DNA from: Rebecca billardiae RCC1528
Taxonomy: Eukaryota; Protista; Haptophyta
DNA length: 64,000 nucleotides
Reading direction: 5' to 3'
Assembly: GCA_965240325.2 (NCBI GenBank)
Contig: OZ251223.1
Location: 4,216,001 to 4,280,000 of the forward strand
Part shown: piece by piece, positions 5,728 through 56,543 of the stretch
How positions within the stretch are numbered: position 1 is the stretch's first letter
Layout: the number at the start of each line of letters is the position of its first letter
Translations under genes and position numbers: made by a program
Notes under the pieces: model-generated
Database searches by the model: none
The model's input: only the letters and a program-made list of their open reading frames with translations
Told to the model about the DNA's origin: nothing

Positions 5728-7242
5728 TCAGTTGTACTGCATGTACTTTGGCGTCGCAGAGAACTTGGCGTAGCCCTTGACCACCTTGTTCACCGCCTCG
5801 ATCATGTCCTTCTCGGTGATGGCCTTGCGGCGCGCGCGGATGGCAAACATCCCGGCCTCGATGCACACGGAGCGGATGTCTGCGCCCGTGCAGTTGGGGC
5901 ACAGCCGCGCGAGCAGCTCGTACCGGATGTCGCGCTCGCAGTTCATGCCCTTGGCGTGGATGGAGAAGATGTGCGCGCGCCCCTCGAGGTCAGGCAGCCC
6001 GAACTCCACCTTGCGGTCGAGCCGGCCCGGCCTGAGCAGCGCCGGGTCGAGCGTGTCGGGCCGGTTGGTCGCCATCAGCACCTTGATGTTGCCGCGCGAG
6101 TCAAAGCCGTCGAGCTGGTTGACGATCTCGAGCATGGTGCGCTGCACCTCGTTGTCGCCGCCCGCGCCGTCGTCGAAGCGCGCGCCGCCGACCGCGTCCA
6201 CCTCGTCGAAGAAGACGATGCACGCCTTCTTCGAGCGCGCGAGCTGGAAGAGCTCGCGCACCATCCGCGCGCCCTCGCCCACGTACTTTTGCACGAGCTC
6301 GGAGCCGATCACGCGGATGAAGCACGCGTCGGTGCGGTTGGCGACGGCGCGCGCGGCGAGGGTCTTGCCCGTGCCGGGCGGGCCGTAGAGCAGCACGCCC
6401 TTGGGCGGGTCGATCCCCAGCTGCGCGAACCGCTCGGGGTGCAGCATCGGCATCTCGACCACCTCGCGCAGCTTCTTGATCTGCTCCTTGCCGCCGCCCA
6501 CGTCGTCGTACGTCACGTCCGGCTTCTCCTCGACCGTCATCATCGTGACGGTCGGGTCGATCTGCGCGGGGCGCGGGCGGCGGGGCGGCGCGGGGGCGAG
6601 GGGCGCCGGCCGCGCGTCGGCGGGCCGGCACGCGCCGCCGCGCACCGCACCGCGCCGCCCCGCACACCTTTGGCGGCAGCGGGATCTGGATCTGGTACTT
6701 GTTGCGGTCCACGCCGACGCGCATGCCCTCCTCGATGTCGGTGGGCGCGACGCGGTCGCCGAGGCCGACGACGAACTTTGCGATCTGCCGCACGTTGATC
6801 ACGTACTTGGCGTCCTCGGTGTTCGGGCTGATGATCTTGGTGCAGCGCGCGACCTGCAGCGGCTGCTCCTCCTGCATCATCTGCTTGTCCTGCACGAGGT
6901 CCCACTGCGAGGGGGGCGCGAGGCCCGTGTCCGACTCCTTGATGCCGATCGTGGCCTCGATCTTCTTCATCAGCCCGTTGATGTCGTCCTGCGTCGTCTG
7001 GATCGACTTTGTGTATGGGCCGACGCCCTGCTCGCGCGCGCGCGGACGGCACGAGCGCGCCGAGGCGACGTCCCGCGCTGCCGCGTGAACGGCACGGAGC
7101 GGGGCCGCGCGCGCGCGGGCACGAGGTGCGCGGCGCATACGTAGGCCTTGAGCAGTGCGATGTCCGCCTCATCCAGTGGGCGGTGGTCCTTCGGCTCGTC
7201 GTCATCCGGCGCGTCTGGCGCGCCCACAGCACCGCTAACCAT
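5728..7242 (-). CDS. RPT1: 26S proteasome regulatory AAA-ATPase subunit 7 (RPT1/PSMC2)
   Basis: Introns 7028-7140 and 6562-6667; [17 protein letters not shown], Walker A GPPGTGKT, Walker B VFFDE, C-terminus [11 protein letters not shown]. Confidence 0.97.
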
Positions 7243-23049: not shown

Positions 23050-23840
23050 AACTCTTGCTCATCTCGTCGCTCGTGCGGGCGGTGTTGGCGGATGCGGGCA
23101 CGCGGCAGACGCGCGGTGCTGACGATGGCGACGATCACTACTACGACGACGACGTGCATGCGCGCCCGCGCGGGCTCGCGTGCGCCTTCCCCTCCTGCAG
23201 GGACGGCGAGATGCTGGCACTCTCACACAAACCCTTGCTCATCTCGTCGCTCGGGCGGGCGGTGTTGGCGGATGCGAGCGCGCCTGAGCCGGTGACACGC
23301 GTTGCTGACGACGACGCTTTCTACATTTCCCTGCAGCAGCCCGCCGGCGGGCCGGGCTGCGACGTCGACTACACCCTCATCCGCTTCATCGACCTGAGCG
23401 CGCCAGGCGGCGCGCTCACTCTCCAAGCCCCTCTTCTGCAGCTGCGCGCCGCTAGGCCGGTACGCGGCGACGTGTACTACGACCTCATCTTCATCCAGGC
23501 GCCCACGCGGGCGCCCGGGGGCGACAGCCGCGGCTGTCGCTTCCCGCAGCTGCACGCCGCTAGGTCGGCAGGCGGCGACATCGACTACGACCTCAGCCTC
23601 ATCCAAGTGCTTCACCGGAAGGCGCTCGGCCGCGGCGGCATCTGCCGTCGCCGCCGCGTGCCCCAGGCCGAGGCGGTGCTCCATCCCGCCCCCGCTCCCG
23701 TAGGGGGGCAGGGCTGCGGGTGGCGCACTGCCTGACCTGGTCGGAAGGCGCGGACGCATTCTATATGTGTCTGCTGCACTCTGAGCCTGACGCTTGCCCG
23801 TTGCATACCACGTCGTTAAATATATATGTATATGTATATA
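23050..23840 (+). mobile_element. Repeat family A, longest copy b (about 780 bp), between (TA)n tracts, with internal duplications
   Basis: 3' end ccacgtcgttaaatatatatg; internal repeats cttgctcatctcgtcgctcg (23054, 23234) and gcagctgc.cgccgctagg..cggcgac..actacgacctca twice. Confidence 0.75.
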
Positions 23841-23854
23841 TTATTTAATGGCAG

Positions 23855-24123
23855 TAGGTCGGCGGGCGGCGACATCGACTACGACCTCACCCTCATCCAA
23901 GTGCTCCGGAAGGCGCTCGGCCGAGGCGGCATCTGCCGTCGCCGCCGCGTGCCCCAGGCCGAGGCGGTGCTCCGGCCCCGGGCCCCGGCCCCGCTCCCGT
24001 AGGGGGGCAGGGCTGCGGGTGGCGCACTGTCTGACCTGGACGGAAGGCGCGGACGCATTCTATGTGTCTGCTGAACTCTGAGCCTGACGCTTGTTCGTTG
24101 CTGCCACGTCGTTAAATATATAT
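23855..24123 (+). mobile_element. Repeat family A, copy c (5'-truncated)
   Basis: Aligns to about 23560-23825 and ends ccacgtcgttaaatatatat. Confidence 0.8.
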
Positions 24124-24138
24124 TTAAGCTAAGGCCGC

Positions 24139-24254
24139 TAACGACGACGTGGTATATGCTTCAACCGGCAGGCGTTGCCAGGCTCAGAGTGCAGCAGACA
24201 CATAGAATGCGTCCGCGCCTGCCGACCAGGTCAGGCAGTGCGCCACCCGCAGCC
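24139..24254 (-). mobile_element. Repeat family A, copy d (short, inverted, tail-to-tail with copy c)
   Basis: Reverse complement gggctgcgggtggcgcactgcctgacctggtcggc..ggacgcattctatgtgtctgctgcactctgagcctg..ccacgtcgtcgtta. Confidence 0.8.
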
Positions 24255-24561
24255 CTATATATATATATATGTGTGTGATTTAAAATTACTAATAATAATA
24301 TAAATGCTGGCGGGGGTTTTCGGACGAATTATATAGTATAGCATATATATACGTGTCACACGCGAGCATGACAGGGCGCGTGATGACACGAGTAGGCGCT
24401 CAGTCTGGCTACCGAACTGTCTTCGTCTGGCTCTGTAAAAGTATATATAGATCAAACCGAGACTACGCCGGCGTGATCGAGATCTCTGACTGCAGCACCA
24501 GGCCAGCACCGTATTGCCTGCGATGGCCTGTGGCAGCCGGTCGTCACTAGCGCTATTATCG

Positions 24562-27134
24562 TCAAGCACTCGGCGGCACAGCACATGATGCTGCCGACGG
24601 CGACGCGCCTCCAAGGTGTAGCACGGCAGCTGCGGCGGTCATGGCGCCAGATGTTGTCGTCACCGAGCTGGCGACGAAGCCGAGCGTATTTGCCGCGCCT
24701 GCGATGCTGGCAACCACCATCAGCCCTCCATACGTGGCGGCGAGCGCGAGCGCGCGCCGAGGCACGCTCTGCGCAGCAGCAGTGGCCAGACCGCTGTCGA
24801 TGGCCTCCTTGATGGCGAGCAGCCCGCCCGGGCCCGTCAGCGCGTACAGGTCGAAGCCGCCCGACTCGGTGCGGCGCGTGGTCTTCATGATGTGCGCGAG
24901 CACCGCCGGCTCGGCTGCGTGGAGCGCGCGCATCGGTGCGGCAAGCACGTGCGCGAGTGCGTGGAGGAGTGTGCCCGAGCGGCGCAGCGGCGGCGGCAGC
25001 GCTGCCTTCAGGATCGACGCGTACGCCGATGCGACGACGCCGTTGACGACGATGTCGCCGTGCAGCGTGATGGGTGCGTACAGCCCGACGCGCTGCACCT
25101 CCGAAACGGACGTCACTGCGGCGGAGACCGCGCCACCGCCGCCGCCAGAATCGACGACGCTCATCACCATGCCGACGCGCACGTCGTCAGCGCGCACGTA
25201 TGCGCCCTGCGCGAGGCGCGCGAGGTGGTCGGACGAGAGCTCGAGTGCGTGGCCGCTCGACAGCTCGACGCGCACGAACGCATGCTGCACGGTGGAGCGC
25301 CTGTCCTCGTGCGCGCTCAGGTACACGGTCGAGTACGCCGCGCCGCCGTCGACGAGCACGCGGTCACCCAGCTCGAGCGCGTCCATGCGCTTTGGGCCGG
25401 CAGGCGTCGTCACCGTTGCGTGGGCGGGGAAGCAGTTGGGAATGAGGCAGAAGCCCTCGTTCGTGCAGTGGTAGCCATCGCCGTTGTTGCCATCGCAGTC
25501 GCCAGCAGTTACACACTCGACGCACCGCCCAGCGCCCGTGTCGCAAAAGAAGTCGTGATTGCTGCCGGCGCCGGCGACAGCGTCGCAGTCGCTGTCCTGC
25601 AGGCACTGCACACACTCGCCGTTCGAGAGGTCGCACAGCCGCTCAGGGATCGCCCCCTGCTCGAGATAGCAGCCGTGCGGGAGTGATTCGCAGTCGGCAT
25701 TGGTCACACACTCGATGCAGGTGCCTGTGCCGTTGCCGCCACCAAGATTGAAGCACTGCAGCTTGTTTGCGTTGCCAGTCTGGCAGTCGGCAGTGATGGT
25801 GCACGCGGTGACAGGGTCCGCCGTGGACAGGCGCCGCCGCCCCCCAACCGGCACGGCGGACGACACCACGTACGCGCACGCCGGCTCGTCACAAATCTCG
25901 TCGTCGGCGCTCCACGCCTTGCACAGTGAGCGCGGCGCCGGGTCGGAGCAGCGCGCATCGCCCTCGAAGCAGTGGTAGATGAGGCATGGCTCCGGTCGCG
26001 GTGCCCCCCCAGCCTCGTGCAGCCTACGCCGCTCGTGGTCATCGAGCGACTCGTCCTCAGACAGGCGGCGGAGGCGGTCATTGACGTTGGGATCCGATTG
26101 GAGCACTTGGCCGTCGCCAGTGACCGTGTACAGCGCCGAGTCGCCGGGAACACCCGAGCGGAAGACGTACCACGTCTCGTCCTGGCCGTTGATCCGCTTG
26201 ACGTAGGACCTGATGAGCTCACCGGTGGCATAGAGCGTCTCAGGGGTCACCTCTGCGAGCTGGCGGAGGCTGCGGCGGCGCGCATTCGAAGACCCGACCT
26301 CGACGGTGCCCTGGGTCTGGCCCGAAGTATTCATGAGCTTGAGCACAGAGCTCATCACACTCGAGTTCACTTCGGCCACCTCGACCAGACGGCGGCCGTC
26401 GTGCTCGACCAGCCGCCTTCTCCGCTTGTCGTGCAGCTCGATGTGGGGCCTGGCACCCGTCGTGCGTGCGGGCTGGCCGTCCGCCCCAAGCTGCACGCCC
26501 GTCTCGCTGTCAACGAATGCCTGGTGTGTCGCCCGTCCCGCGCGCGTGACACGGGTGGCATGAGCAATTGAGCGGCGCGAAGCAAGGTGGCGTGGTCTGC
26601 ACTCCTGACGAGACTTGTTGTGGGCGGGCAGGGACTTCGCACACGTGCTCGCGCGCGTGCGGCGGACCTCCTTCGAGAGCTCGCCCGCCAGCACGGCGGC
26701 GCCAAACATCGCGCCCAGGAGCACTGCGATAGACACGCACAGGACGGCGCTCAGAAACTGGTACTTGCGCTTGGTCTTCTTCTCGACCAACACCTCGGCG
26801 CAGATCGTCTTGACCTCCGCTGCCGAGAACTTGCCATCGTGGTTCTGCATGCCACCACCATCAGGACGCGGGAGGGGCAGGAGGGGGCGGGGTGGCGCGC
26901 GCTGTCAGGCGGGCACATGGGCTGACAGCTGCAGGGGCTGTGCGTCAGCGCGCTCACCAGATCGTACTTTGCGAGCGTGCGCTCGACGGCGTCGATCTTG
27001 CCGTCATTGTCCGCATCGTACATCGCCAGCTCCTCTACCCTCACTGTGTTGGTGCGAGAGGTCACGCCCGGCTCGCGCGCTGACGCGCCATCAGTGTTGC
27101 CAGTGCGCTTGAAGAGCCCGGCGACGCCCTGCAT
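24562..27134 (-). CDS. Hint-domain protein A: two EF-hands, TM, RRL-separated modules, Cys-rich repeats, Hedgehog-type Hint, hydrophobic tail
   Basis: Introns 26845-26957 and 26521-26667. EF loops DADNDGKIDAVE and DLNHDGKFSAAE; Hint N-CFPAHATV..LELGDRVL..LELSSDH..GLYAPITLHGDIVVNGVVASAY starting at 25434. Confidence 0.88.
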
Positions 27135-27719
27135 GCTTCCCCGTCCTCGTCACGACTTGCGATGTGTGGCACAGCGGCGCCTGCAGCCCCGCCCGCCGTC
27201 GATGACGAACTTTCGCCGGGCGGATCGTGCTCCTACTACTGTGAATGAGTATTCTCATACTGTACCCAGAATTGGCAGGGTCTCGTTGGTTTGGCGTCCA
27301 TCTTAAATCAGCCAATCAGGCCATTGGCCATAGCATGTACGTATAGTATCATACACACACCATCATGATTCATGACTGTATCGCGACCTGCATGGGTAGG
27401 GTTTGGCAGTGGAGAGCCTGTCGTTGACCATGATGCAGACTGGACGATGATGAGCCGAGCGGTACCTGTAAGTTATGCATGCCTGAGGCTATATTAGCCA
27501 GATGTATTGACGAAAAATCTCAATCGTCATCATCATGAGTTACTTTTCTTTAGTACGAGGCTTCTGAGAGTACTTTACGACGCGAAGATTGGCGCGCATG
27601 TGATGGATTATCATAGTCATGAACACCGGTTGGAAGTTAAAGTGTGGGACGGGCGACCGCGAAGGCCGAGCGAGACAGCGAGTGAGGAAAGCGGAGCGGC
27701 CCACGACCTAAGGCCGAGG

Positions 27720-30203
27720 ATGACGAGCTTCTTTCGAGGCGTCGGCGAGATGTTTGGCGGCGGCGGCGGCGCTGCGGGCGAGCCAGCTGCCCCCCAGCGG
27801 ACGGCGACGTCCTCGCAGCGCGATCGGCACCAAACTCGCGGCACTCGGAAGACCTCGACCTCGTCGGCGTTCACGTACGACGCGGACGGTGACGGTACAC
27901 TCGACCCGCTGGAGCAGATGCTCAAGGACTACGATGTGGTGCGGCGCAGCTCTCGCGCAGAGCGCGTTTAAAGTGCGCGACCCCACTGCCTCGCGCATAC
28001 GCCGCTCATGACTCGCCTCATCTGCGCGCACTGGCTTTCTTTGCGCTCGGGCCCGGCCCCGCAGGACGGCAACCACCGCTACTCGACCGCCGAGGTCAAG
28101 GCGATGGTGCAGGCGATGCTCGAGCACCGAGAGGGCGGACAGAGGTACAGGCGTCTTGCTGCTGTTCTCGCTGCTGTTTTCGTCGCGCTCATCGCGAGCA
28201 TCTTTGGCACTGCCTACCTCGCGAGCGATGTCACCAAGGAGGTGCGCACAGCGCGCAAGCAGTGGGCGACTGCGCGTGAGATCCTCAGCCTCATCATTGA
28301 TCATGGCCGCCCGGCTCACCCTTAGGCACGCCCTTGCGCCGCACGCGCGCACCTCGCGCCACGGCTGAGTCGCGCTCACCCCACCTGCCCGCTGTGCGCG
28401 CTCTGGATGATGCCCGCACTCACTCTCTCGCGCTCGCGCCTTGCGCATCAGACATTCCTGAGCTCTGGCTCGAACCTGCTCACCGACAGGGACGGGCGCG
28501 GGGTGATGTTCGGCGCCAACCTCGTGCGCGCGACGCAACACGACGACACGCGGCGGCGCCTGCGCGTGGTCGGCGGACGCCAGCTCGTGGAGGTGGGCGA
28601 TGTCGACCCAACGCAGGTCCAGGGGGTGATCGACGCCATCAACAACAACGTGACGAGTGGCACCGTGCTGATCAGCACAGGCGGCTCTTCCTCCTCCCGC
28701 CGCCGGCTCCAGGACTTGGGTACTGCGCTGTCGATGCTGACGGCATCGGGCTACCTGGTCGCCATCCAGGTGATCGATGGCGCAGTGTACTACCAGGTGA
28801 CGCAGGCTGGCGGCGGCGGTCCGTCGTACTGGCTCACCTCAAGCGGAGCCGTCCTCTCGCAAAGCCCAAGCAGGCGGCTGCGCCGGCTGGACGCGGCCGA
28901 CTCGTACGACCACCACCGCCAGCGCCGGCTGGCGGAGGGCGGCAACGGCACGACGTCCGCGCACTGGCCGCCCAAGTGCTTCGTGTACCATTGCTTCGAA
29001 GGCGACGCGGGCTGCACCGAGCCCTCGCCGAGGTCGTTGTGCGCCACGTGGAGCGCGGATGGCGCGGAGTGCCTCGAGCCTACGTGCGCATTTGTGGACG
29101 CTGGACATGCAGCGCGCCACGAAGCGCGCCGCCGGCTGGAGACCACATCCTGCACCGGCGATGCCGACTGCGAGGCCAACTGCTACACCGAGCACTACGT
29201 CGTCCCGAAGCGGAAATGCGTCTCCGGCAGCTGCGTCGAGTGCAGCGCCGATGCCGACTGCACCACAAGGACCACGCCATCTGGTGACTACGACGATGAT
29301 CTGCTGCGAGGCTGCGACGGAGGCGTGTGTGTCAAGTGCAACAAGGCCAAGCAATGCGCACGCTCGTGTGAGGACTCGGATTGCGAAGACTGCTTCCCCG
29401 CGCACGCGACGGTGACGACGCCTGCCGGCCCTAAGCGCATGGACGCGCTCGAGCTGGGTGACCGCGTGCTCGTCGACGGCGGCGCGGCGTATTCGACCGT
29501 GTACCTGAGCGCGCACGAGGACAGGCGCGCCGCCGTGCAGCATGCGTTCGTGCGCGTCGAGCTGTCGAGCGGCCACGCACTCGAGCTCTCGCCCAACCAC
29601 CTCGCGCGCCTCGCGCAGGGCGCATACGTGCGCGCTGACGACGTGCGCGTCGGCATGGAGATGAGCGTCGTCGATTCTGGCGGCGGCGGTGGCGCGATCT
29701 CCGCCGCAGTGACGTCCGTTTCGGAGGTGCAGCGCGTCGGGCTGTACGCACCCATCACGCTGCACGGCGACATCGTCGTCAACGGCGTCGTCGCATCGGC
29801 GTACGCGTCGATCCTGAAGGCAGCGCTGCCGCCGCCGCTGCGCCGCTCGGGCACACTCCTCCACGCACTCGCGCACGTGCTTGCCGCGCCGATGCGCGCG
29901 CTCCACACAGCCGAGCCGGCGGTGCTCGCGCACATCATGAAGACCGCGCGCCGCACCGAGTCGGGCGGCTTCGACCTGTACGCGCTGACGGGCCCGGGCG
30001 GGCTGCTCGCCATCAAGGAGGCCATCGACAGCGGTCTGGCCACGACGGCTGCGCAGAGCGTGCCTCGGCGCGCGCTCGCGCTCGCTGCCACATATGGAGG
30101 GCTGATGGTGGTTACCACCATTGCCGGCGTCGCCAACGCCGTCCGCAGCGCCGCCAGCTCGGCGACATCGGTACTTGCGGCTGCGCGGCTGGCGAGCCCG
30201 TGA
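27720..30203 (+). CDS. Hint-domain protein B, paralogue of A with the same architecture
   Basis: Introns 27939-28064 and 28242-28451 at positions homologous to A. EF loops DADGDGTLDPLE and DVDGNHRYSTAE; Hint D-CFPAHATV starting at 29391. Confidence 0.88.
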
Positions 30204-30324
30204 AACGGTGCGGCGTAAACTTAAATAATAAAAATTCCGGGTGCCGCGCGCTCATCATCAGTGATGACTTAATCTGTCTCTGAGCAGCAGCTTTGTCCGC
30301 CTGATAGTCGTGATATCATCAACT

Positions 30325-30614
30325 ATATATATATATATATATATCTTTAACGACGTGGCAGCAACGAACAAGCGTCAGGCTCAGATCGAGTGCAGCAGAC
30401 ACATAGAATGATGCGTCCGCGCCTTCCGTCCAGGTCAGACAGTGCGCCACCCGGGGACGGGCACCCGCAGCCCTGCCAGTGCCCCCCTACGGAGTACGGG
30501 AGCGGGGCCGGGGTGGTTGGTGGAGCACCGCCTCGGCCTGGGGCACGCGGCGGCGACGGCAGATGCCGCCGCGGCCGAGCGCCTTCCGGAGCACTTGGAT
30601 GAGGGTGAGGTCGT
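30325..30614 (-). mobile_element. Repeat family A, copy e (inverted, 5'-truncated) with (TA)n tail
   Basis: Reverse complement acgacctcaccctcatccaagtgctccggaaggcg...cttgttcgttgctgccacgtcgttaaagatatata. Confidence 0.8.
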
Positions 30615-30793
30615 AAGATAAGATTCATCAATAAGTGTATTACGAAGTTGACGATGTTCGATGCGTGGACGGAGGGGTGGGTGCTGATGGCCCCTGATGT
30701 GTGGCTGAATGACCCGTGAGGTGGCCACGTGACAGAGCGTCAGTGACTACGGTACTGACGGTTGGACGTTGGTCGGCGAAACTCGGCGCCCTC

Positions 30794-31135: not shown

Positions 31136-33283
31136 ATGCTTCCACAATCCAGATGCGAGGCGACGCGCGTGCAGCGTCGCCAGGGCAGACGGCTCTCGCT
31201 GCGCGGAGGGGCGGCGAGTGTCGCGGCAAGCACTAGCACGCTCGACCGTCCGCCCTCCCCGTGGGGCGAGTACACGTTTGGGCGCGTGGTCGGGCGCGGG
31301 CGCTTTGCCGACGCGCGGCTCCTCGTGCATGACGAGCACGGCGAGGCGGACCCGTCGCGCGTGTACGTGTTGAAGCAGCTTGCGGATGGCTCGGTTGAGT
31401 CCGACTCGGCCGATTGCTGCCTTACAACCGCGCAGGCTGCCGCGCGCGAGGTTGAGATCCTCTCGCTGCTGCGCCACCCAAACGTGCTGCGTTGCTGTGG
31501 CGCGTTCGCGGCCGCGGGCGTGATCTCGATCGTGACGGCGCCGTACGCGGACGGCGGTACGCTCGAGGCGCGGCTGCGCAAGCATGCGCGCGCGGCCAAG
31601 CCGCTCGACCGCGCTCTCGTGTGCGGCTGGGCCTTCGAGCTCGCGTCCGCGCTGCAGCACATCCACGCGCGCGGCGTGCTGCACCGGGACCTCAAGGCGG
31701 CGAACGTCCTCCTCGCCTCGGGGGCGGCGCTGGCACGGCGTGAGGCGGGGCCGGCGTTGGAGGAGTGGCAGCTGCACCTGCGCGAGCACGTGCTCATCGC
31801 CGACTTTGGCGTCTCGAAGCGCGTGCATGTGCGCGCGCGTGAGGACGCCGGACGCGTCGCGTCCGGTGAGGGCGCGCACGAGCGTGGCTTGCACACGCCC
31901 GCGCCGGAGGCGGAGGCGGAGGCGGAGCGCGAGCACGCGGGCACTTGCATCGGCACGCCGTACTACCTCAGCCCCGAAGTCGTCCTCGGCCGGCCGTACG
32001 GCTCGAAGAACGACGTGTGGTGCCTGGGCGTCGTGCTGTACGAGACGCTGGCGCTGCGCCGCCCGTTCGAGGGCGCCAACATCAGCGCGCTCGCGCAGGC
32101 GATCGTGGGGAGCGAGCCGGCGCCGCTGCCGCTGCACGCGCCGCCGGGGCTCGTGCGGCTTGTGGGCGCGATGCTGGCGAAGAACTGCGCGCGCCGCGCC
32201 TCCTCGGCACAGGTGCTGCGCGCAGCCAAGGCGGTGGCGCGTGCCGCGCGCGCCGTCGGCGCCGAGCGCGCTGCCGCCTCCGCCTCACACCAGCTGCCTG
32301 CGCGCGCCCCACCGCCGCTCAAGCGGCCGTCGAGCGAAGCGCTGTCGCTCGTGCCGCGCGAGTCGTTTGCGTCGTGCCTGTCGCACCAGCCTTCCTTCCA
32401 GTCCGTCGCCGCCGAGCCAGCGGAGGACGAGCCGGCTGCCGATCCCGACCCGGACCTGGCCGCCGCCGAGCTCGACACACCGCGCAGCTCGAGGCGCCGA
32501 GCACGCGATGGAGCCGTGATGGACGCACGGGGGCCGCCCGCGCTGAGCACTGCGCACTCGGCGCCATCCGCGTCGGCGCTGGGCTCGCCCGTTGCCGCCA
32601 CGCGCGCGCACTCGCTCGAGGTCACGGAGGCGCACGGTGCTGCCCCTGCGCGCGTCGCCGCTGATGCGGACCCAGACCCAGATGACGCGGACGGTGCGGC
32701 CGCTCGCACGACGCGTCGCCCGGCGTTCCGCGGCGTGCTGCGCGCCGCCGGCTTGGAGCGCGTCACCGACGCGACGGCCGACGACGACGAAGATGGCGAC
32801 AGCGACACAAGCTCGACGGTGGCCTCGCGCTGGCCTGTGTGGCGCGGGCGCGCTCGCCCAGCTGGCGCAGACGCGCTGCTCGGCAGCGGCCAGCGCTGCC
32901 CCAGGCGCGTGCGCCTGTGTGCGCCGGCTGCAGAGGCAGATGGCGCGGCGGGCGCGGGAGCAGCGAGCGCGTCCACGGCTGCGCGCGCGAGCTCAGTGTG
33001 CTCAAGAGGACCAGCTGCGTCGCCGATCGAGACCGACGCCGCTGTGCTCCCGCCGCGGCGCGCGGGGCGAGCGCTGCACGCAGCCTCGAGGCTGTCGTCC
33101 GACGGTCCGTTGCGCGGCGCCGCGCGCACCAAGCCGTGGGAGGCAGGCTGGGCCACACGCCTGCTGAGGCTGTTCAGCGGTGGTGGCGGAAGCAGCGTCT
33201 GCGCCAGCGTGTGCCGACTCGAGCTGCGGCCTCGCGCACTGGCACTGCGCTCTGTGGCGAACACTTCCTGTCCGCCTGTGTAG
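31136..33283 (+). CDS. NIMA-related (NEK-like) Ser/Thr protein kinase with insertions and a low-complexity C-tail
   Basis: GRGRFA, YVLK, HRDLKAANVLL, ADFGVSK, GTPYYLSPE, YGSKNDVWCLG. Confidence 0.88.
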   Translation: MLPQSRCEATRVQRRQGRRLSLRGGAASVAASTSTLDRPPSPWGEYTFGRVVGRGRFADARLLVHDEHGEADPSRVYVLKQLADGSVESDSADCCLTTAQAAAREVEILSLLRHPNVLRCCGAFAAAGVISIVTAPYADGGTLEARLRKHARAAKPLDRALVCGWAFELASALQHIHARGVLHRDLKAANVLLASGAALARREAGPALEEWQLHLREHVLIADFGVSKRVHVRAREDAGRVASGEGAHERGLHTPAPEAEAEAEREHAGTCIGTPYYLSPEVVLGRPYGSKNDVWCLGVVLYETLALRRPFEGANISALAQAIVGSEPAPLPLHAPPGLVRLVGAMLAKNCARRASSAQVLRAAKAVARAARAVGAERAAASASHQLPARAPPPLKRPSSEALSLVPRESFASCLSHQPSFQSVAAEPAEDEPAADPDPDLAAAELDTPRSSRRRARDGAVMDARGPPALSTAHSAPSASALGSPVAATRAHSLEVTEAHGAAPARVAADADPDPDDADGAAARTTRRPAFRGVLRAAGLERVTDATADDDEDGDSDTSSTVASRWPVWRGRARPAGADALLGSGQRCPRRVRLCAPAAEADGAAGAGAASASTAARASSVCSRGPAASPIETDAAVLPPRRAGRALHAASRLSSDGPLRGAARTKPWEAGWATRLLRLFSGGGGSSVCASVCRLELRPRALALRSVANTSCPPV

Positions 33284-33775: not shown

Positions 33776-35476
33776 TCAGTCGTCGCCGGCGACGCTCTGC
33801 ACCGGCGGCGGCGCGCCGTCACTCGCCGGCGCCGCCAGCGCCGCCGCCGGCTTGGCGGCACCATCGAAGCGCAGTGAGAGCGCGAGCGTGAAGCCCGCCA
33901 CGAGCGCGAGGAAGTAGAAGGGCGCGTGGAAGTCGAGCGGGAAGGGCCACTCGTTGTGCGCGAACGCTGCGAAGAAGGAGCCCATCGCCGTCGGCGCGAG
34001 CGCGCGCGCGAGCGCGCTGATCGACTGCGCCAGCCCGTTCACCAGCCCGACGTGCGCGTGCAGCAGGTTGTTCATCAGCACGCTCACCGAGGTGAAGGCG
34101 GAGATGCCGGCGATGCCGCGCAGCACGGACACGCACGTCAGCGCGGACCACAGCGCGAGCGGCGAGCGCGCGCGGGCGACGCGCAGCGCGGGGATGCACC
34201 CCATCACCACGAAGAAGACGCACATGCCCAGCCGGAAGCACGCGACCGTGCCAAACCGCCGGTCGAGCCGGGTGAAGGCAAACGGCCAGACCAGCAGGCT
34301 CACGCCGAGCGGGGCGAGCGCCGTGCCCACCTGCGAGGGCTCGAGGCCGAGGCCGTGCTCCTCGTTGGCGCAGAAGAGCGGGAAGAGCTCCTGCATGCCC
34401 GACACGAGGAAGTTGAGGAAGAACTGCACGTAGATGCTGAACATGACGCCGCCGCACAGGAAGGCGCGCGCGGCCGGCCCGACGCAGCGCGCGCGCCGCG
34501 CGCCGCGCGCGCGCGCGTCGCGCCGCTTGAGCAGCGCGTCGTCGTCCTCGTCGGGCGGCGCGTTCGGCAGCGGCGCCAGCACGTCAGCCCGCGCCATCTC
34601 GATCGCCGCGTGCGGCGGCGGCGGCGAGGGCGGCGGCGACGGCGCGCCGCTGCGCCCGCCGCCGGGCGGCGGCTGCGCCTCGTCCGCGCCCACCTCCACG
34701 TCCGGCGGCAGCGGCGGCAGCGCGGCCTCCGCGCGCGCGGGCGGCGCGGGCTCGTCGGCCCGCTGCAGCGCGCGCGAAGCGGCGCGGTCGCCCGCGCGAG
34801 CGCTCCCGCGCGGCTTCGCCGCGCGCGGCGGCTCGCGCAGGAACCCGACGAAGCACAGCCCGACGACCGTGCCGGCCGTCGACGCGATACACGGCAGCAG
34901 GTATGGGTGGCGATCAAAGACGCTCCCGCGGAACAGGGAGGGCAGCGTGTCGGCGGGCTGGCTGAGCAGGCCGCCCATCGCCGGGCCGACCATCGCGCCG
35001 GCGCCGTATGCCACGCCGAGCACGGAGAAGCCGCGCGTGCGGTTGGACTCGCTCGTCATGTCGCGCATCGCCGCGCGCGCCACGCCCGTGTTGCCGTTGA
35101 GCAAGCCGCCCAGGCAGCGCGCGAGCATCGCGCGGCCGAGCGTCTTGCTCATGCCGAAGAGGACCATCGACGTCGCGGTGCTGACGAGCCCGACAATCAG
35201 GATCGGCCGCCTGCCGTGCACGTCCGACAGCCTGCCCCACACGAAGCTGCTCAGGAAGTTGCACGCGTTGTACGCGGACGCGAGCGCGCCCGCCCAGTAC
35301 CCGACCTCGTCGTCCGCGATGCCAAAGCTGGCGACCATGAAGGGCACGAAGGGGTAGAGGACGCACTGCACGATCGCGTCGCTCAGGGTCACCGCGCACA
35401 CGCAGAACACCTGCAGCCTCGGGAGCGCATCCTCGTCATCTACCGGGCGATTGCCTTCCGCCCGCGCTTCCGCCAT
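33776..35476 (-). CDS. MFS transporter (ZIFL/DHA1-like)
   Basis: Motif A WGRLSDVHGRRP, ARCLGGLLNGN, GPAMGGLL; 12 TM with Pro-rich central loop. Confidence 0.9.
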   Translation of the reverse strand: MAEARAEGNRPVDDEDALPRLQVFCVCAVTLSDAIVQCVLYPFVPFMVASFGIADDEVGYWAGALASAYNACNFLSSFVWGRLSDVHGRRPILIVGLVSTATSMVLFGMSKTLGRAMLARCLGGLLNGNTGVARAAMRDMTSESNRTRGFSVLGVAYGAGAMVGPAMGGLLSQPADTLPSLFRGSVFDRHPYLLPCIASTAGTVVGLCFVGFLREPPRAAKPRGSARAGDRAASRALQRADEPAPPARAEAALPPLPPDVEVGADEAQPPPGGGRSGAPSPPPSPPPPHAAIEMARADVLAPLPNAPPDEDDDALLKRRDARARGARRARCVGPAARAFLCGGVMFSIYVQFFLNFLVSGMQELFPLFCANEEHGLGLEPSQVGTALAPLGVSLLVWPFAFTRLDRRFGTVACFRLGMCVFFVVMGCIPALRVARARSPLALWSALTCVSVLRGIAGISAFTSVSVLMNNLLHAHVGLVNGLAQSISALARALAPTAMGSFFAAFAHNEWPFPLDFHAPFYFLALVAGFTLALSLRFDGAAKPAAALAAPASDGAPPPVQSVAGDD

Positions 35477-35686
35477 CGCGCATCTTCTGATGTCGTCGCA
35501 AGCCGGCGCCTGCCAACTCCAAACTCGCCAGCACAGTCCGGCGCCCCTGCCAAGCCGCAAGCGACACACGCACGGCTTTTCTCCGGACAAGCGGTTGATG
35601 CATCGAAACATTCAATTTCGAAAATCCGGCCGGGCAATTTGAACGGGCCCGTCCTCACGGTCGTCACGCCCGACTCCCCCGGCATC

Positions 35687-54584: not shown

Positions 54585-55774
54585 TCAGCCGCGTCCCCTC
54601 ATGTTGCCCGAGCCCTTTGCGTTCGAGTCCTTGAACTCGTCAAAAGACATCGCTTTGGCGCGCTCGGACAGCTCGTCCTCCTCCTCGACGGCGGTCTGCG
54701 GCCCATTTTCGCGCTCGGCCTGCGCGGCGGCCTTCAGCGCGTGCTGCTCCTGCTGCCTCTGCTGCTCGAGCGCGACGCGCTGCGCCTCCTGCCGCTGCCA
54801 CGCGTCCAGCTCGATCGTGTGCATGCCCGGGATGCGGCCCGAGTGCACCTGGTCGATCACCTGCGCGCGCGCAGCCGCGCACGCGGGCCGAAGGCAGGGC
54901 GGGCGGCGCGCGCTGAGACCTGGCGAGCACGCGCGCGGGCGCGGGCGCGGCGGCGGCGGCGTCGGAGCTGCGAGGCCGGTCGGCTGCCACGCGCGCCGCT
55001 CGCGCGCACCTGCTCGTACGCGGAGCGTTGGCTCGGGTGCGGGATGCGCACGCTCTCGAGTGGGCGCGCCGGGCGCGCCGCCGCATCTGCATCCGCGTCG
55101 TCGCGCAGAGCCTCGGGCTTCTCGCGGCGCAGCCGCTCGACCTCCTCCAGCATGGGCAGCTCCTGCGCCACGGACGCGAGCGTGTCCGCCGCCCCAAACT
55201 TTGCGACGGACAGCCAGTGCAGCGCGTGCTCCTTCTCGACCTCGTCCACGTCAGGGTCGTCGTCCTGGTCGGTCGAGCGGCCGCGCGCGGCGGCGAGCCT
55301 CGCGGCGGCGGCGTCCATCTGCGCGCGCACTTCGCGCTCCGCCTTGATGCGCGCGATCATCTGCTCGCGCTGCCGCATCGCATTGCCCCCGCCCTTCGAC
55401 CCCGCCGCCTGCAGGGACGCCGCCTCGTCGTCGGTGATCAGCCCGATCGTCGCGAGCGACTCGATGTACCGCTCGAGGTGGGCCTTCCCCTCGCGGAGGT
55501 GCTCGATCCGGCGGTCGTGGTCGACCTGGCGCATGACAAGCTCGCCGAGCAGGTACGGCACAAGCATGTACTTCAGGTCCCCCGGGTTGATGTCCTCGAG
55601 CGTCTCGTTGGAGGAGAAGATGGAGAGCTCGTGCACCAGCGTATCGCACGCGCGCGCGTGCTCCAGGCCGTCGGCGACGATCTGCAGGTACGCCTCGTCC
55701 GAGGAGGCGAGCGAGGTCTCCTCCGTCTCACGGAACTTCGCTTGGGCCGCCTCGAAGTGCGAGCGCAGGTTCAT
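54585..55774 (-). CDS. TAP42: PP2A regulatory subunit TAP42/alpha4 (IGBP1)
   Basis: Intron 54861-55009; IFSSNETLEDI..LKYMLVPYLLGEL, C-terminal FDEFKDSNAKGSGN. Confidence 0.9.
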
Positions 55775-55912
55775 CCTGCCGCGCGCGGTGACGTGAGAGC
55801 AAACGTCGGTCCAGGGCGGACGATGGCGGCCGCCCACGTCCGGCCGTGCGTCCGGACCTTGCCCGCAGCAGGACTGGCTTTGGCGACTTCGTGCCACGTG
55901 CAAGGAGCCACC

Positions 55913-56543
55913 ATGGTGCGCGAGGGCCGCGCACCGCCTCGCGGCCGTGGCAGTGGCCAGCGGCGCGGCGCTGCAAGCTGCAGCGGGCCGCTGGGCCATT
56001 GCCTGACGTGCGCGTGCCCTTGTGCGCCCCGTCTGCGCTGCGTGCGACCGCGTTGCGCCCACACCAGGCCAAGGCCGCGGCACCCAAGTCAAAGGAGGCA
56101 AAGGCCAAGGCCGCGACTTCTGGCGGCAAGGGCAAGAAGAAGGTTCGCCACGCCGCGAGCTGCACGCGTGCGCACACCTCGCAGGCCGATCAACGCGCCC
56201 GTGCATCGCGCCCCGCGGATCGGGCACTCGAGCGAGCACGCCCACGCCTGACGGGTCATTCCCATCCCGCCGCCCGCTCGCTCGTGCCGAGCAGAAGTGG
56301 TCCAAGGGCAAGGTCAAGGAGAAGCTCCAGAACCTCGTGCTCTTCGACAAGAGCACATACGAGAAGCTGATCGCGGACATTCCGAAGAACAAGCTGATCA
56401 CGCCGTCGATCATCTCGGAGAAGCTGAAGGTGAACGGCTCGCTCGCGCGCAGGGCAGTGAAGGAGCTGCTCTCAAAGGGCCTCATCCGCTGCATCGACGC
56501 GCACCACGCACAGTCGATCTACACGCGCTCGAGCCACGGTTAA
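55913..56543 (+). CDS. RPS25: 40S ribosomal protein S25 (eS25)
   Basis: ATG-only first coding exon; introns 55916-56067 and 56143-56294; [23 protein letters not shown]. Confidence 0.96.

Follow-up and report, generated by a model that had tools for sequence, protein, structure and literature searches.

Homogenised Hog halves in inverted gene pairs of the haptophyte Rebecca billardiae: probable gene conversion bounded by the catalytic cysteine codon

Introduction

Drosophila Hsp70 pairs and the palindromes of the human Y chromosome are inverted paralogs under concerted evolution. Conversion between adjacent inverted paralogs is also documented in C. elegans, in the inverted hsp16 modules and in an hsp70 pair (PMC3966223), and in the fog-2/ftr-1 case of the same species conversion is confined to the homologous part of two partly unrelated paralogs (PMC3966223). 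Here we describe a pair of inverted genes, which we call alpha and beta, in a stretch of 64,000 nucleotides (the window) of Rebecca billardiae RCC1528 (GenBank assembly GCA_965240325.2, contig OZ251223.1, positions 4,216,001 to 4,280,000 of the forward strand). Both genes end in a Hog domain, by which we mean a Hedgehog-type Hint fold together with the region that follows. The Hog halves of the two genes are nearly identical, and the halves upstream of them (the front halves) are strongly diverged.

The pair resembles the inverted-paralog systems in that two opposite copies lie a few kb apart and are more alike than their age allows, as expected of non-reciprocal homogenisation. It differs from them in that only the 3' domain is homogenised, up to an edge as sharp as a single codon, while the rest of the genes is saturated with silent change, and in that the arrangement exists as three dispersed replicate pairs. 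The scale is different as well; the arms of the Y palindromes are tens of kb long and more than 99.9% identical, whereas those described here measure 0.72-0.85 kb and are 97.5-98% identical. As in fog-2/ftr-1, exchange appears to persist in the shared region while the non-homologous region stays distinct and carries the functional difference. Those genes, however, are tandem and the unique region came from recruited sequence, whereas the genes described here are inverted and both front halves derive from one gene.

Hog proteins with varied N-terminal cargos are known from haptophytes, red algae, other protists and nematodes (Burglin 2008, PMC2362128). Alpha and beta are like these proteins in that a Hedgehog-type C-terminal domain is joined at the catalytic Cys to unrelated cargos. 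Unlike the present work, that paper makes no mention of paired genes or of gene conversion, and a literature search found no paper combining the terms 'Hog domain' and 'gene conversion'.

Results

A repeat search of the window returned one inverted repeat, 24659-25436 against 29389-30166, with 778 nt that are 96% complementary and a spacer of 3952 nt. The repeat joins the ends of two long open reading frames, 24562-26850 on the minus strand (alpha, 762 aa) and 28407-30203 on the plus strand (beta, 598 aa), which are transcribed divergently (head-to-head), so that the Hint halves form the outer ends of the unit. To map the edges we used an ungapped comparison of alpha with beta, anchored at the catalytic Cys codon TGC (25434-25432 on the minus strand in alpha, 29391-29393 on the plus strand in beta), whose first base is counted as +0. 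Mismatch is random-like until -3; from there only 18 mismatches occur over +0 to +722 (2.5%), and on the 3' side mismatches are dense once more from about +723. The converted tract proper is therefore the interval 24712-25434 (-) together with 29391-30113 (+), with arms approximately 97.5% identical. At the protein level the arms are 96% identical over 235 codons, with about 9-10 differences. Upstream of the tract, the front halves of alpha and beta are only 41% identical in protein and approximately 52% in DNA. The cysteine content also differs, being higher in alpha; a manual count on the translations gave 3 C-x-x-C...DC units in alpha and 2 in beta, and 17 Cys in alpha against 13 in beta between a six-Cys module and the Hint domain. 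In all of this the original prediction was accurate. It had given the same tract limits, had placed the start of the similarity at the catalytic Cys codon, had counted about nine amino-acid differences by eye, and had described the upstream parts as strongly diverged with more Cys repeats in the minus-strand gene.

The same architecture is present elsewhere in the genome. The assembly comprises 72 Mb in 41 contigs (approximately 70% GC) and comes close to chromosome scale; a six-frame search for Hint found ten Hint genes in it, all above the Pfam cut-off. Six of the ten make up three inverted alpha/beta pairs, their genes approximately 4 kb apart, on contigs C3 (this window), C8 and C12, and every pair consists of one alpha-type and one beta-type gene. 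The C8 pair lies at 2536821-2542361 and the C12 pair at 2759056-2764467; both have the exon layout seen in the window, and both units are inverted on their contigs relative to the window unit. No similarity was found among the flanks of the three pairs within 20 kb on either side, which rules out a larger segmental duplication over that distance, and the homology between C3 and C8 ends at the stop codons. Because the three loci have no flanks in common, the copied unit is the pair itself; a unit of approximately 5.6 kb thus appears to have been copied between chromosomes.

The remaining four Hog genes are unpaired (Table 1). Their cargo consists of a signal peptide, a long Ser-Pro-rich stretch and a small Cys-rich module, so that the ten genes have two unrelated classes of cargo; their Hog DNA forms a tight clade with end branches of 0.04-0.05. 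The DNA similarity of all Hog genes to alpha sets in at the Cys codon (query position 1865-1867). A broken, pair-type Hog relic, derived from the region after the Hint fold, was also seen at C14:802099-802383 (L035 5100-5384); it has 51-64% protein identity over 80-95 residues, an in-frame stop and an apparently frame-shifted stretch. Outside this genome, relatives were found at eight metagenome loci, all on contigs of 1-4.9 kb that are too short to reveal a paired layout. A word search with beta gave one protein, 48% identical, on a 2.5-kb contig; its other hits, in red algae and a fish Hedgehog, were distant and confined to Hint, and the beta front half had no usable match in a protein atlas search.

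The two halves of the paired genes have different histories. In maximum-likelihood trees, the Hog DNA groups by locus (support 100/99, 100/99 and 92/93), whereas the front halves group by type, alpha with alpha (support 100/100), and approximately unbiased (AU) tests rejected the opposite grouping in both partitions (p from 1e-4 to 1e-39). Individual sites tell the same story. In the quartet of C3 and C8 genes, 299 sites ahead of the Cys codon favor type and none favors locus; in the tract, from +0 to +722, none favors type and 33 favor locus; and beyond +731 the count is 44 for type and 5 for locus. The difference between the upstream and tract counts is highly significant (Fisher's exact test, p = 2.9e-46). 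The switch points fall between -3 and +47 on the 5' side and between +664 and +731 on the 3' side; as the last type-supporting site upstream is -3 and the next one is +731, the quartet places the tract at -2 to +730. Quartets containing C12 gave the same site pattern. We also applied a run test of the Sawyer/GENECONV type, in our own implementation, to 936 polymorphic sites. The window pair has a run of 47 consecutive agreeing sites against a permuted maximum of 15, and the other two pairs have runs of 76 and 63; permuted maxima over the three pairs were 15-25 (p <= 0.0002).

Silent divergence was measured as synonymous divergence (dS, by NG86) and as divergence at four-fold sites in identical-residue codons (K4). 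Within a locus, the front halves of alpha and beta differ by a dS of 1.13-1.33 and a K4 of 1.22-1.30. Front halves of the same type differ much less, by a dS of 0.18-0.21 and a K4 of 0.13-0.17 between C3 and C8 and by 0.84-1.11 and 0.60-0.84, respectively, in comparisons to C12. The alpha and beta front halves are thus saturated at silent sites, and their split is older than the separation of the loci. For the Hog halves the relationship is reversed. Within the C3, C8 and C12 pairs they differ by a dS of 0.048, 0.028 and 0.021 and a K4 of 0.045, 0.031 and 0.019; between C3 and C8 the values are 0.15-0.18 and 0.14-0.16, and between either of these and C12 they are 0.39-0.46 and 0.34-0.39. Since K4 within pairs is far below K4 between loci, the split between the Hog halves of a pair is 3.5 to approximately 20 times more recent than that between the loci. 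Along the genes of the window pair silent divergence is therefore strongly non-uniform, with a K4 of 1.22 in the front half against 0.045 in the tract; in the tail, where 35 codons were available, NG86 dS rises again to 0.79. The ratio of nonsynonymous to synonymous divergence (dN/dS) of the front halves, 0.36-0.50 between C3 and C8, indicates purifying rather than diversifying selection. For the Hog differences within pairs this ratio is not low (0.4-0.8).

All three pairs have their 5' edge at the Cys codon, to within 0-3 nt. The 3' edge is less uniform, lying at about +708 to +730 in C3 and C8, while the C12 tract reaches the stop codon (about +849). Within the tracts the leftover mismatches are unevenly spaced (p 0.07, 0.012 and 0.05 for the three pairs), a pattern that fits several events of different ages per locus but could also come from local constraint. 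Private changes in the tract number 27 in alpha and 13 in beta (p 0.04), with direction judged from paralogs and multi-base changes counted per base, and give a weak indication of faster change in the alpha arm.

Both Hint domains are confidently identified. Pfam Hint (PF01079) matches alpha with an E-value of 6.5e-26 (91.7 bits, ORF residues 472-618) and beta with an E-value of 7.1e-27 (94.8 bits, ORF residues 325-474), against a cut-off of 29.7 bits. In Drosophila Hedgehog the catalytic residue set, established in work on structure 1AT0, is Cys258, Asp303, Thr326 and His329. Alignment by phmmer to the solved Drosophila Hedgehog C-domains 6td6, 6tyy and 1at0 (E 1e-9) shows that the first Cys (Cys258), the Asp (Asp303) and the His (His329) are conserved, with Ser in the place of Thr326 (the motif reads Ser-Ser-Asp-His in alpha and Ser-Pro-Asn-His in beta). 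Because the Cys, Asp and His align with these residues, the Hog module looks catalytically competent and self-cleavage is predicted. Approximately 90 further conserved residues lie behind the Hint match and within the converted tract, at the place of a candidate adduct-selecting region. An AlphaFold2 model built on a seven-row alignment was too poor to use (mean predicted local distance difference test score, pLDDT, 35.7).

Reading the upstream DNA in all frames suggested a three-exon layout common to both genes, with GT-AG introns at the same positions and in the same phase (Table 1). Pfam searches of the cargo were made exon by exon. The EF-hand-like loops stayed under the Pfam cut-off (EF-hand_1, 16.6 bits against 25.4, in alpha exon 1; a weak EF-hand match with E 0.14-0.33 in beta exon 1), and the second loop is interrupted by intron 1 and was read from two exon ends only. 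A 25-residue hydrophobic stretch is visible in the translation of alpha exon 2. The Arg-Arg-Leu-rich and Cys-rich region of exon 3 matched no Pfam family when the exon peptides were scanned. On these gene models, the alpha and beta products would be membrane-anchored cargos joined to a Hog module. The front part best conserved between alpha and beta is the six-Cys module (25866-25986 and 28977-29097, 72% DNA identity); because all of its informative sites favor grouping by type, this module is kept by selection rather than by conversion. The 585-bp spacer between the start codons, presumed to act as a promoter, could not be aligned with the matching spacer at C8.

Table 1. Coordinates of the Hog gene pair in the window, with the unpaired Hog genes of the genome
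Feature	Position	Strand	Basis
Converted arm, alpha: Hint fold, region behind it, first half of C-terminal hydrophobic segment	24712..25434	-	Repeat search, anchored comparison, quartet sites
Converted arm, beta	29391..30113	+	Repeat search, anchored comparison, quartet sites
Alpha inferred exon 1: ATG at 27134, first EF-hand-like loop; donor GT at 26957	26958..27134	-	Sequence reading
Alpha inferred exon 2: remainder of second EF-hand-like loop, single membrane span	26668..26844	-	GT/AG sites; introns match those of beta
Alpha inferred exon 3: Arg-Arg-Leu-rich/Cys-rich outer domain, Hog, hydrophobic tail, stop	24562..26520	-	Open frame; AG acceptor 26522-26521
Alpha-specific C-terminal tail, outside the tract	24562..24711	-	76% protein identity to C8 alpha tail, 49% to own beta tail
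Spacer between start codons, 585 bp; presumed shared divergent promoter	27135..27719	.	Position between inferred ATGs
Beta inferred exon 1: start codon, first EF-hand-like loop	27720..27938	+	Sequence reading; weak EF-hand match
Beta inferred exon 2: second EF-hand-like loop, membrane span	28065..28241	+	Boundaries and phase as in alpha
Beta inferred exon 3: outer domain, Hog, tail, stop	28452..30203	+	Open frame; Pfam Hint
Beta-specific C-terminal tail, outside the tract	30114..30203	+	83% protein identity to C8 beta tail, 49% to alpha tail
Unpaired Hog gene on C24	L013 4846-6267	-	Hint search
Unpaired Hog gene on C23	L014 5101-6516	-	Hint search
Unpaired Hog gene on C3 (2.32 Mb)	L015 4752-6545	+	Hint search
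Unpaired Hog gene on C17	L016 5245-6699	+	Hint search

Both 3' flanks of the window pair contain a dispersed repeat of approximately 270 bp (23505-24256 and 30324-30615), which looks like a miniature transposon or a SINE-like (short interspersed nuclear element) family and numbers at least 518 candidate copies genome-wide, approximately 94% identical. The copies on the alpha side are tandem or nested and include a hairpin-forming pair of 78 nt (24009-24086 / 24179-24256). We considered whether the inverted repeats in the flanks are the outer parts of a bigger palindrome and rejected this, as they are copies of the dispersed family. The C12 pair has one copy 1.9 kb downstream; the surroundings of the C8 pair have none. 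The neighboring genes in the window are ordinary eukaryotic housekeeping genes, none of them related to the Hog pair: proteasome subunit Rpt1 (6101-7138, minus strand), a protein kinase (31136-33283, plus strand), an MFS transporter (33776-35611, minus strand) and a TAP42-like protein (54857-56494, minus strand). The proteasome subunit is 90% identical to a protein cluster to which Diacronema lutheri belongs; on this one protein, the source would probably be a pavlovophyte-like haptophyte.

Discussion

We consider it very likely that the Hog arms have been homogenised independently in each pair by intrachromosomal gene conversion, because the Hog halves group by locus and the front halves group by type, with a sharp switch between the two. 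Gene conversion between inverted copies was one of two explanations put forward in the original prediction, and the non-uniform silent divergence, the significant run test and the two further pairs with the same incongruence between front and Hog halves all speak for it. The other explanation, a modular cassette in which a fixed processing domain is joined to diversifying cargo, fared less well. Modularity as such is borne out, in that all ten Hog genes join cargo to the domain at the Cys codon and two cargo classes exist, but there is no site pattern of cargo swapping; the cassette would thus be a matter of evolutionary modularity only, with no sign of active cassette exchange. The idea that the cargo is diversifying gained no support, as the front halves are stably orthologous across the loci and their dN/dS between C3 and C8 indicates purifying selection.

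The history that we propose is that an ancestral three-exon gene was duplicated long ago in inverted orientation, and that the resulting pair was then copied as a unit onto three chromosomes, with C12 branching off first and C3 and C8 separating later. After the loci had separated, the inverted arms of each would have undergone homologous recombination of the non-reciprocal kind, in which one Hog half was overwritten by its partner; each locus would have seen this at least once, and probably repeatedly. We infer that recombination of this kind produced the tracts and that loss of homology, together with selection, fixed their 5' edge. Ahead of the Cys codon, alpha and beta share only about 50% of their bases and are set apart by indels in the Cys repeats, which would leave nothing for a heteroduplex or for annealing to pair; because homology has been lost there, a tract could not spread 5' of the codon. 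The first Hint motif, on the other hand, is conserved even in the unpaired Hog genes. Purifying selection and a strong codon bias on this motif, with a GC content at third codon positions (GC3) of approximately 0.9, may keep the edge identical and so provide an anchor for the next event. At the 3' end the tract stops within the C-terminal hydrophobic segment in C3 and C8, where the tails are type-specific.

Several observations weigh against this account or limit it. The Hog halves of C12 and of C3 or C8 are about twice as similar (K4 0.34-0.39) as front halves of the same type (0.60-0.84), and a simple timing of the three loci does not account for this mismatch; either codon bias would have to be stronger in the Hog half, or the loci would have to have exchanged sequence by conversion at an earlier time. 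The GC3 of the tract is 0.88-0.91 and that of the four unpaired Hog genes is 0.90-0.96; as the unpaired genes are equally or more GC3-rich, no footprint of biased conversion can be demonstrated from GC3. The uneven spacing of mismatches is a weak sign of repeated events, and in C3 and C8 the longest stretches of identity overlap with those Hint motifs that are conserved best. That homology loss and selection can yield a base-exact edge is itself something that we infer. Lastly, conversion is deduced here from one assembly, from which a single event per locus and ongoing exchange are not firmly separable.

Among the alternatives, the one that survives best, although we regard it as improbable, is that the identity of the Hog halves is functional. 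In one version, the two precursors are co-expressed and need the same module (for a shared adduct, cofactor or partner, or for trans cleavage in a heteromer), so that converted alleles are favored and the codon-exact edge is a selected border at which a signal that diverges meets a processing engine that stays constant. In another version, the arms are sites for occasional inversion of the 4-kb center, which would re-pair the tails and 3' flanks of alpha and beta. Consistent with a functional role, (i) the architecture of a pair with identical Hog halves has been kept at three loci despite a K4 of 0.6-0.8 between them; (ii) the edge coincides with the exact residue at which the cargo would be released; and (iii) the tails outside the tract are type-specific at two loci. 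Selection is nevertheless unnecessary, as homology loss alone accounts for the edge, and the dN/dS of the differences within pairs (0.4-0.8) is not low. With regard to the inversion version, the alpha tails of C3 and C8 are both still joined to alpha front halves, meaning that no net inversion has occurred since these loci split.

We think it highly unlikely that there has been no exchange at all and that the near-identity of the Hog halves results only from much stronger purifying selection on the self-cleaving domain than on the cargo. Hint is indeed the most conserved part of the family, its first motif is common to the unpaired genes and GC3 is very high. Selection on the protein does not hold silent sites, however, and K4 is 0.02-0.045 within pairs as compared with 0.14-0.16 between C3 and C8. 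Selection alone also predicts a Hog tree like the front tree, which the AU test rejects (p 9e-7 and 1e-39), and it leaves unaccounted for the 33 sites at which both genes of a pair have the same fixed state, with none favoring type.

There is similarly little to recommend the possibility that the 5.6-kb unit is a present or former mobile element with the Hog ends as its long terminal inverted repeats. Three dispersed copies whose flanks have no genes in common over 20 kb to each side, homology between C3 and C8 that stops at the stop codons, and arms that are outermost in the unit would all be expected of such an element. Against this, no transposase or mobility gene was seen in the unit, which is filled by the two Hog genes and the 585-bp spacer (the scan was limited to exon peptides); the arms encode protein and are subject to purifying selection; the type-specific tails in C3 and C8 lie outside the arms, so that the repeats are not terminal; and the short dispersed repeats nearby belong to a genome-wide family that is not present at all three loci. 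Finally, although misassembly is a classic problem with near-identical inverted repeats, an assembly artefact, whether from a repeat that was collapsed or made chimeric or from palindromic reads, is a most improbable source of arms that are 97.5% rather than 100% identical, that sit in frame inside two different long ORFs with diverged coding DNA on both sides, and that recur at three loci, with an arm sequence private to each, in an assembly of nearly chromosome scale.

Independent gene conversion within each pair thus remains the explanation that we favor. It reveals no new mechanism; the process is a known one, of which this is a new and unusually clean example, from a family where conversion had not been noted. 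What sets it apart is that three replicate pairs each switch from grouping by type to grouping by locus within three bases, at the predicted self-cut residue, and this makes the pairs a compact system for studying how homology loss and selection limit conversion tracts. For the family, a practical consequence is that trees of Hog domains in this lineage are misleading with regard to gene history unless the front halves are used. For the organism, the gene models lead to the prediction that two different membrane cargos, expressed from one shared spacer, would be processed by essentially the same module.

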